Positions 26,493 to 28,682 of a DNA stretch of 64,000 nucleotides are shown piece after piece (position 1 is the first letter of the stretch; each line of letters begins with the position of its first letter). Source of the stretch: Pavona decussata (taxonomy: Eukaryota); contig CDRNST010000027.1 of NCBI GenBank assembly GCA_977016875.1, forward strand, positions 1,426,001 to 1,490,000, given 5' to 3'. The notes under the pieces are model-generated. The model was not told the DNA's origin. It worked only from the letters and a program-made list of their open reading frames with translations, and made no database searches. Both the position numbers and the translations under genes were made by a program.

Positions 26493-26825
26493 TTAAGGAC
26501 GGTGCCTACTAATACAAAGGTATTGTTGGGCGGTTTATGCGTACGCTGAAAAAGCAGATATCAGCAAGTTATTGGAATCCAAACCAAAACTTGGGCAGCA
26601 GTTGTTCACAGACAATGAAGTGGTATACTTTCTAAAAAGATTCAAAGTACACAACAATAAAACATTTCTTCCAGAATAAACTGAAATTGTGTGGTTACGC
26701 ACAATTTTCACATTGGATTTCAATAGACTTTGTCAAGTTGTTTGCTTTATTGTTGCTATAGTTTTATTGTTTGTGTTTTTGCATAGCCATAAACACAAAA
26801 ACGCCTTCGTATTAAGAGGCACCGG
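26493..26825. mobile_element. TTAA-type (Kolobok-like) MITE remnant
   Basis: Left end ttaa-ggacggtgcctactaat; degenerate right end attaagaggcaccg. Confidence 0.5.
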
Positions 26826-26985
26826 AGTTTCTTGGTCATCCAGTGATGCGTAGAAAACATTTTCACTAACGAGAGCAGAAACCTCCCTTAAAGCAGAGTG
26901 TACAATTGACACAAACATTTTTTTCTTTCCTTTTTTTGCAGTTTTATATATAAAAACAACGATACTTGTGAATTGTTCGTGGCTA

Positions 26986-27029
26986 GTCTGACGCGGCGTT
27001 TCGTCTCGGCCATGAGACTCTTCAGAGAC
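26986..27029 (-). ncRNA. Type I hammerhead ribozyme (minimal, near-palindromic stem III)
   Basis: Minus strand: GUCU-CUGAAGA-GUCUC(AUGGCC)GAGAC-GAAAC-GCCGC-GUC/AGAC. All core nucleotides are present; stem I is GUCU:AGAC; predicted cleavage is between 26990 and 26989. Confidence 0.85.
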
Positions 27030-27184
27030 CTTTAGAATTTGTAGCCAAACTAGTTGAGTATCACGGTCAAAGTCCCGTTCGCAAATTCAAGATGTTTGCA
27101 GTCTGGCCCTCTATCGCAGAGACGAAACGCCCCGTCAGACTAGCCACGAACAATTCACAAGTATTTGACAATTTTTCAATTCTT

Positions 27185-27658
27185 GAGAGAAATGTGATGG
27201 TATATTTCCAGCCTGGTGAATGAATGAGAATGATGATTATTCAAGAAAGTGACGCAGGCATACTCGGAAAAAAGAAATCCGAGTGCTCCTATCAGGAGTC
27301 GAACCTAAGACCTTCCGATTACTAGTTCGGATGCTCTACCAAGAAATTTCTTTTTTCCGAGTATGCCTGCGTCACTTTCTTGAATAATCATCATTCTCAT
27401 TCATTCACCAGGCTGGAAATATACCATCACATTTCTCTCATATACCACACGTTCGACATTCAAATCCTAGCAGTATGCAGGATGTTTGTCCCATGAACCT
27501 AGTTTAATGACCTTAGCACCCACGAGTCTCCTGTAGCTCAGTGGTAGAGCATCCGAACTAGTAATCGGAAGGTCTTAGGTTCGACTCCTGATAGGAGCAC
27601 TCGGATTTCTTTTTTCCGAGTATGCCTGCGTCACTTTCTTGAATAATCATCATTCTCA
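27185..27658 (+). mobile_element. tRNA(Thr-AGT-like)-containing element: inverted segment plus ~1.2 tandem copies of a 259-bp unit, with 14-16-bp TSD
   Basis: TSD caatttttcaattctt at 27169-27184 and 27657-27672. 27185-27341 is the reverse complement of unit sequence; direct repeat 27346-27399 / 27605-27658; tRNA-like cloverleaf at 27527-27599 with A and B boxes. Confidence 0.85.
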
Positions 27659-27675
27659 ATTTTTCAATTCTTTAT

Positions 27676-27901
27676 TGTATAAAAACAACGATACTTAAAT
27701 TAAAACTTGTATAAAGTTTCCCAAACGCCGATATTTCCCGTTCGAAACAGCTCTAGATATTTCGACTCCAAAAATGTCTTTCCTTTTTTGCAGTTTTGTA
27801 TATAAAAACAACGATACTTAAATTAAAACTTGTATAAAGCTTCCCAAAGGCCGATATTTCCCGTTCGAAACAGCTCTGGATATTTTGACTCAAAAAATGT
27901 C
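27676..27901 (+). repeat. ~123-bp tandem duplication; the second copy retains the empty insertion site
   Basis: 27777-27901 repeats 26924-26967 + 27697-27779 without the inserted elements. Confidence 0.85.
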
Positions 27902-28371: not shown

Positions 28372-28682
28372 ATTTTTTTCAGGCTTTCTTTTCGCAACTG
28401 CTCAAGTTGCGTACTATAACTGCGAGGATCTTTCTTCTATTTGATCTTTCATCCGCAGTTCAAAATATATGTTTCATATTTCTACATTCATTTATTCATC
28501 CTTCACGGGTATGTTACGAACTCACAATATGACCAGCTCCCAGATGGCTTGATAGCTCAGTTGGTGGAGCACTGCACCGGGATCGCGGAGGTCATGGGTT
28601 CGAATCCCGTTTCAAGCTTTCTTTTCGCAACCGCTTAAGTTGCGTACTAACTGCGTACTACTGAGGATCTTTCTTCTATTTA
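28372..28682 (+). mobile_element. Second tRNA-containing permuted tandem unit (~233-bp period)
   Basis: gctttcttttcgcaac at 28383 and 28616; tRNA-like module at 28546-28617 (tagctcagttgg, ggttcgaatccc, acceptor stem gcttga/tcaagc). A diverged minus-strand fragment lies at ~52985-53105. Confidence 0.75.

Follow-up and report, generated by a model that had tools for sequence, protein, structure and literature searches.

The stretch of stony-coral DNA analysed here, a window of 64,000 nucleotides (nt) from Pavona decussata (GenBank assembly GCA_977016875.1, contig CDRNST010000027.1, positions 1,426,001 to 1,490,000), raises the question of why a complete hammerhead ribozyme motif should stand opposite an inverted half of itself. 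A first-pass annotation made from the letters of the sequence read the locus as a minimal insertion of a Penelope-like element (PLE), with a GIY-YIG-like C-terminus just upstream of the ribozyme and with the inverted half able to silence it. Based on our analysis, the segment from 26962 to 27683 is probably one old insertion of a non-coding, hammerhead-bearing repeat of 218 or 222 nt. The family to which this repeat belongs is likely a metazoan retrozyme lacking long terminal repeats (a non-LTR retrozyme), unlike in sequence to the one published from the coral Acropora millepora, and its copies were likely integrated by the enzyme of a PLE. We put the probability that these three statements hold jointly at roughly 85%. 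The inverted half-ribozyme is a stereotyped scar of head-to-head integration that recurs throughout the family and no designed switch.

The ribozyme motif of the window copy is intact. From 27030 to 26986 the minus strand reads GGUCU-CUGAAGA-GUCUC-AUGGCC-GAGAC-GAA-ACGCCGCGU-C-AGAC, and a type I hammerhead occupies 26986-27029 of that strand, where the first-pass annotation had placed it. Helix I (GUCU/AGAC plus a G.U pair) is open, helix II has 5 base pairs (bp) and a 6-nt loop (AUGGCC), and the GAAA box and a GUC cleavage triplet are in place. The core is complete (C3 U4 G5 A6 N7 G8 A9, G12 A13 A14, A15.1-U16.1 and H17). When a 501-nt segment (26800-27300) was searched under an E-value threshold, the Rfam model Hammerhead_1 (RF00163) matched over model positions 1-45 of 45 with 28.9 bits and E = 4e-5. 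The check proposed at the outset, a run of this model with Infernal, therefore recovered the exact coordinates at full length but with a score below the curated gathering cut-off of 34 bits. At that gathering threshold, a default scan of the whole window against Rfam returned only two matches, both tRNA-like (transfer RNA-like), and did not report the hammerhead because its score lies under 34 bits. The shortfall is mainly due to the short helix I, which offers 4 Watson-Crick pairs and one G.U where the model has 6 pairs. As read from the Rfam alignment and the sequence, the GUC triplet ends at 26990, and the predicted self-cleavage site on the minus strand lies between C17 (26990) and A1.1 (26989), as had been expected.

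Helix III (ACGCCGCGU) had been drawn as ACGC-C-GCGU. It is indeed near-palindromic, but steric constraints do not allow a loop of 1 nt to close a 4-bp stem. What can realistically form in cis (ACG-CCG-CGU) has 3 bp and a CCG triloop, with a predicted energy of +0.6 kcal/mol, whereas two ribozymes could pair with each other in a duplex of 8 bp with a single C.C mismatch, predicted at -11.8 kcal/mol. In its full core, its type I arrangement and a helix III that is more stable between molecules, the motif resembles RF00163 and the dimer-acting hammerheads of newt, axolotl and PLEs. It and its relatives score between 27.7 and 28.9 bits, below the 34-bit cut-off of RF00163.

Those relatives are numerous. 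The same 602-megabase coral genome was searched with a 157-nt query (27118 to 26962), and among 327 candidates 110 matches were scored, at 90-100% identity, many of them head-to-tail at a spacing of 218 or 222 nt. The distance between consecutive cleavage sites is likewise 218 or 222 nt, each unit contains an intact type I hammerhead, and Tandem Repeats Finder delimited arrays of 7.7 and 3.4 units with 99% identity within the array. The ribozyme sequence is the same in nearly all copies, scoring 27.7 bits against Hammerhead_1, and the window ribozyme departs from it by a single base of loop 2, at 27013. For an exact 41-nt motif of the family the genome yields 156 occurrences, and for a reversed control pattern 0; therefore, the hammerhead motif is present far beyond chance. 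The unit, a ribozyme plus about 170 nt, has a guanine-plus-cytosine (GC) content of 44%, has no LTR, primer-binding site or polypurine tract, and is non-coding, with at least two stops per unit in each of three frames. More than 100 short insertions are dispersed over many contigs, each with flanks of its own, and target duplications of 11-14 bp surround at least 10 of the 19 family loci examined. The family thus shows the genomic features by which metazoan non-LTR retrozymes are recognised (PMC7229834), namely tandem units of 170-400 bp with a hammerhead, a GC content below 50% and duplications longer than 4 bp.

Tandem units that are 99% identical within an array could also belong to a satellite DNA that carries a hammerhead and spreads at the DNA level, via unequal crossing-over, segmental duplication and palindrome formation, with no RNA intermediate. 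There is precedent for such a reading, as the hammerheads of newt, Schistosoma and cricket were first described as satellite DNAs. However, the present family is scattered in more than 100 insertions with their own flanks and 11-14-bp duplications, its copies have discrete 3' ends and variable 5' ends, and an empty site of the window insertion has been kept in a paralogous repeat unit. Given the above, spread as a satellite is very unlikely.

The retrozyme of Acropora millepora has self-cleaving units of 220-245 nt that occur as circular RNA in vivo (PMC7229834). The family described here is like it in the non-coding unit of about 220 nt, the head-to-tail arrangement as dimers to multimers, the presence of one type I hammerhead per unit, the GC content below 50%, the target duplications above 4 bp, the coral host and the short self-complementary helix III (ACAGUACUGU in the published ribozyme and ACGCCGCGU here). 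It is unlike it in that the units have no blastn similarity and the hammerhead is a different one, with a helix I of 4-5 bp and no evident loop 1, nearer to the 'minimal' hammerheads of the PLE type. In addition, the window copy is solo and truncated. Circular RNA and cleavage are known for the Acropora family, whereas the present one is known from genomic sequence and motif. Identity of the two was considered and rejected: the published primer was not found in the genome, the published hammerhead core occurs 7 times, and blastn detects no similarity. The published coral family is rare in this genome and the 218/222 family is common. About 7 copies of the Acropora-type hammerhead (CUGAUGAGGCC..AAAGGCCGAAACAGUACUGUC) are present at up to 2 mismatches, and one pair of them lies 226 nt apart (G000:C214:5484307-5484557, L081-L083). 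These close matches to the Acropora hammerhead, together with the coral metagenome label of the RNA-seq runs in which the present family occurs, mark the host as a stony coral.

How the window copy relates to the family becomes apparent once it is mapped onto the unit, numbered so that position 1 is the first base past the cleavage site. The minus arm (26962-27120, minus strand) amounts to 0.72 unit, running from unit position 92 to 222 and then from 1 to 28; it contains the whole hammerhead, terminates in a 'short' 3' end (...CACAAGTAT) and is 96.2% identical to the 222-nt unit. Head-to-head with it stands the plus arm. The first part of that arm (27119-27184, plus strand) covers unit positions 204-222 and then 1-48 at 97% identity, and the second (27657-27683, plus strand) covers positions 33-59 at 100% identity over 27 nt and terminates in the 'long', or tail, 3' end (...TTGTATAAA). 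In total the plus arm comes to 0.43 unit (unit 204 to 59), and the window copy is solo and truncated, with no array. The inner junction of the arms has a 2-nt microhomology (GA). At 27119-27137 the ribozyme's 3' half is present in inverted form, comprising the 3' strand of helix II, GAAA, helix III and GUC, with one substitution at 27132. The arms of the inverted repeat, 26962-27013 and 27113-27164, are 94% complementary, and their homologous core (27119-27164 against 26962-27007) has 1 mismatch in 46 nt, which bears out the earlier statement that the 3' half recurs inverted at 27119-27164.

Both arms are enclosed by a target-site duplication of 13-19 bp. Its left copy (26949-26967, plus strand) is TATAAAAACAACGATACTT, with a minimum of 13 nt (AACAACGATACTT); the last 6 nt (ATACTT) may be the element's. 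In the right copy (27678-27696, plus strand) the first 6 nt (TATAAA) overlap the element end. When the left flank (to 26967) is joined to the right flank (from 27697), the result aligns without a gap across the junction with a neighbouring paralogous 123-nt repeat unit, which is, as judged from this alignment, the preserved empty site of the insertion. The target of the insertion is itself a 123-nt tandem repeat with units 93% alike (27671-27901, also 26908-26967).

The minus arm has six private substitutions, at 27097, 27066, 27059, 27052, 27045 and 27013, and the window copy is about 4% diverged from the family. With six such substitutions in 159 nt, the window copy is therefore older than the 99%-identical arrays. 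Four of the substitutions (27045, 27052, 27059 and 27066) are exactly 7 nt apart and in no predicted helix compensatory; this spacing is probably due to chance.

Twenty independent family loci were mapped onto the unit together with the window copy, and 17 insertions, the window copy included, are two-armed. All 17 are head-to-head, with the minus arm followed by the plus arm and the 3' ends facing outward. Every one of the 17 has a long outer end, within unit positions 53-66 (median 62), and a short one, within 15-39 (median 27); the offset between them has a median of 34 nt. Were each end chosen independently and at equal odds, 17 heterotypic pairings out of 17 would have a probability of 7.6e-6. 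The longer (tail) end can be on either side (9 cases against 8), the inner junctions are scattered over unit positions 12-221, and several family loci have a complete ribozyme on both arms. Inverted arms or a tail at retrozyme insertions are not mentioned in the published retrozyme accounts compared (including PMC7229834).

This geometry agrees with what has been published on PLEs. Their insertions are marked by partial tandems, by a neighbouring inverted copy that is truncated at its 5' end and by a tail of 30-40 bp on just one side (PMC8557442), and in vitro a PLE enzyme cleaves and extends both DNA strands, with reverse transcription starting from two adjacent internal sites of the RNA (PMC11167929). 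All 17 two-armed retrozyme insertions have the inverted 5'-truncated copy and the one-ended tail, the latter measuring 34 nt here against the 30-40 bp published. The family also shares with PLEs (PMC8557442; PMC11167929) the head-to-head orientation, partial tandems, target duplications of variable length and a hammerhead upstream of the 3' end. Unlike PLEs, it has no open reading frame for a reverse transcriptase or a GIY-YIG domain, it has no similarity to the PLE tails sampled, and its unit is about 220 nt long as compared to 3-4 kb.

The autonomous PLEs of the same genome mirror the pattern. At least 933 GIY-YIG candidates attest to their abundance, and where GIY-YIG matches lie close together in opposite orientation the minus match precedes the plus match in every pair noted. 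Several PLE families have a minimal hammerhead about 200 nt past the GIY-YIG domain. Their 3' ends were sampled from 50 copies (30 loci from the GIY-YIG search and 20 from other score classes, about 10 score classes in all). The best-sampled family, the most abundant in the sample (loci L037, L048, L049, L050, L039/L044, L041/L042, L052/L053 and L057/L058), has a minimal hammerhead of its own (CCUGAAGAAGGCUGG...GCCAGCCGAAAUA) and two discrete sets of 3' ends, which follow the hammerhead start at a distance of about 86-96 and about 173-185 nt. Its head-to-head pairs combine one end of each kind in 8 of 8 cases, and its 'tail' is about 87 nt long against the published 30-40 bp.

A retrozyme might instead have been copied by the reverse transcriptase of a long interspersed element (LINE), with the inversions arising from twin priming and with no part for PLEs. 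Twin priming by L1 does yield head-to-head inverted insertions with target duplications. Both candidates were left standing by Cervera and de la Pena, who wrote of 'LINEs or PLEs' (PMC7229834). However, copies made by twin priming should have a single fixed end, the 3' one, with the other end internal and variable, whereas the outer ends observed here lie at two fixed internal sites 34 nt apart and are always paired. Furthermore, the copies have no poly(A) or simple-repeat tail, and the rule of heterotypic ends is kept by autonomous PLEs of the same genome. A LINE-type origin is accordingly improbable to a high degree, and copying by a PLE enzyme is preferred.

It remains to be considered whether the locus could be a PLE in its own right, as the first-pass annotation had it: a minimal, 5'-truncated autonomous element with a GIY-YIG end, a hammerhead in its 3' terminal repeat and an inverted arm acting as an antisense switch. 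The peptide AIEGQTANILNLRTGL does exist as a translation, its stop lies 37 nt upstream of the ribozyme, and PLEs are very abundant in the genome, with at least 933 GIY-YIG candidates and several families that have minimal hammerheads. However, the same peptide is part of a 28-codon open stretch that is closed by stops in every 218/222-nt unit; the frame only looks longer in the window, where the inverted arm and the nested repeat described below extend it. A Pfam search of the peptide gave no GIY-YIG match and no match at all, and the notion of a GIY-YIG-like C-terminus was rejected. Moreover, when the unit, including 27030-27118, was compared by blastn (word size 7) to the 3' regions of the 50 sampled PLE copies, no significant similarity was detected, which is the very finding that the first-pass annotation had named as counting against itself. 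Among the sites listed, no exact-hammerhead site adjoins a GIY-YIG match. The sequence belongs, as one copy, to a retrozyme family made up of tandem repeats, and the description as a minimal PLE insertion was not upheld. What stands of the PLE connection is mechanistic and comes from the scars, together with a helix III that is short and self-complementary as in ribozymes of the PLE and newt type; it does not extend to sequence kinship. As there is no similarity to the 50 PLE 3' ends, the link to PLEs is therefore one of insertion geometry only.

The part of that explanation concerned with silencing can be judged separately. For an RNA running from 27164 to 26962, a hairpin of about 46 bp is predicted to be thermodynamically dominant at -115.8 kcal/mol; in it, helix III and the cleavage site are buried along with the GAAA box and the helix II 3' strand. 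When the inverted arm is left out, the predicted energy is -32.4 kcal/mol and helix II is formed. The folding energies thus agree with the idea that the inverted arm would silence the ribozyme in a spanning transcript, which favours the view of the locus as a PLE with a switch. However, a regulatory switch is not supported, given that the inner junction is different in every copy, that the antisense segment consequently differs between copies and that several loci have a whole ribozyme on each arm. The antisense half-ribozyme is better seen as a by-product of integration that, according to the folding model, would inhibit the ribozyme in any spanning transcript that might be made.

Transcript data also bear on this point. 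In four coral metatranscriptome runs, 52% of the family's sampled words are present. In two coral metatranscriptome runs most of the unique flanks have no depth at all, against a depth in the thousands on the element, and at 5 of the 6 private positions (27097 is not listed) the family letter, not the window letter, makes up 96-100% of the overlapping contig depth. In a DNA-like run, flank depth is about 41-58 and the left junction is spanned. Neither the unique flanks, which served as a silent control, nor the markers offered by the six private substitutions give any sign in the contig data that the window copy is transcribed. Taken together with the Pfam result, the dissimilar PLE 3' regions and the variable inner junctions, this makes an autonomous PLE fragment with a built-in switch extremely unlikely. 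The ribozyme motif of the window copy is intact, and the locus is most likely an inert relic of the retrozyme family.

The observations can be arranged into a stepwise route by which such copies may have formed. Extrapolating from published work on retrozymes, transcripts of an array would cut themselves at every hammerhead to give unit-length RNAs, a tRNA ligase would circularise these, and multimeric or circular RNA would then serve as the template of a borrowed reverse transcriptase. Judging from the scars, the borrowed enzyme would be that of a Penelope-like element, which would cut both DNA strands 11-19 bp apart. Each 3' end would prime complementary DNA (cDNA) on the retrozyme RNA at fixed sites about 27 or about 62 nt past the hammerhead cut, and the two cDNAs would meet at a variable point and be joined head-to-head. 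As the insertions can span several units and the cDNAs start 27-62 nt past the cut, the template would have been uncleaved or circular. The proposed route would produce the arms seen in the window: a minus arm with one whole ribozyme, a plus arm with its 3' half, heterotypic ends and a duplication of 13-19 bp. With one complete ribozyme and no partner, the window copy would be unable to release a unit-length RNA; at most one cut could be made in a host transcript. We infer cleavage and circularisation from the published coral family, and the steps documented here are the genomic ones.

Measured from the hammerhead start, the first cDNA start site of the retrozyme is at about 70 nt and the second 34 nt further; in the sampled PLE family, the first is at about 86 nt and the second about 87 nt further. 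It is conceivable that the PLE reverse transcriptase is positioned on its template by a cis-acting signal to which the hammerhead contributes through its fold rather than through cleavage, and that retrozymes hijack PLEs by structural mimicry and not through shared sequence. We regard this as a speculative and rather doubtful extension. On that reading, the scars would document in vivo a dual-strand, two-site mode of priming that has so far been known only in vitro.

Several points weigh against identification of the family as a PLE-mobilised retrozyme. The circles of published retrozymes are described as 'highly self-paired', whereas the circular fold predicted here is not unusually stable: the folding energy of the circular unit is -47 kcal/mol, not below that of shuffled sequences (z = +0.3; folded units, L009:1408-1629 for 222 nt and L020:1630-1847 for 218 nt). 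Among the family ribozymes, no compensatory changes were found and scattered variants break pairs; the copies are too alike and too young for covariation to be informative. The Rfam scores of the hammerhead, 28.9 bits in the window and 27.7 bits in the family, fall under the curated cut-off, and self-cleavage of either version is a prediction from the motif. In its short helix I and self-complementary helix III the ribozyme is like the 'minimal' ones of the PLE type, and by analogy it may act as a dimer. The published coral ribozyme, with a helix III that is similarly short, cleaves well as a monomer (PMC7229834). No autonomous PLE sharing sequence with the retrozyme was among the 50 copies sampled from at least 933 candidates, and a partner may have been missed. 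Lastly, the RNA evidence consists of assembled contigs without ends, strand or circular junctions, from which rare variants may have been dropped and in which DNA carry-over is possible.

Taken by itself, the window locus matters little, as the mobile repeat is present there in a single dead copy. The family to which it leads adds a second family of coral retrozymes with no sequence relationship to the first, published one. The insertions of this second family bear an unusually clean Penelope signature that is mirrored by the PLEs of the genome, providing direct genomic support for the mobilisation of animal retrozymes by PLEs, a claim that is still inferential.

The plus arm is split by a nested tRNA-like repeat of 472 bp (27185-27656), flanked by a 16-bp duplication (CAATTTTTCAATTCTT) at 27169-27184 and 27657-27672. 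In other copies of the retrozyme family there is no gap between the equivalents of 27184 and 27673, and contigs from other copies join 27171 to 27661. The tRNA-like repeat is, as these junctions indicate, a later insertion than the retrozyme arms. Within it, a perfect 95-nt palindrome (27184-27278 against 27346-27440) surrounds a reversed partial tRNA, and a tRNA-like gene is located at 27527-27599/27600, to which ARAGORN assigns no amino acid. In the DNA-like run the contig depth summed over the nested repeat exceeds that of the unique flanks by a factor of about 30,000, and in the RNA runs it is very high as well. Further along the window, a tRNA-Pro(GGG)-like gene (28546-28619) lies amid direct repeats 233-239 nt apart (28377-28416/28610-28649 and 28424-28445/28663-28684), which suggests that the segment 28377-28684 belongs to another tRNA-related repeat family.

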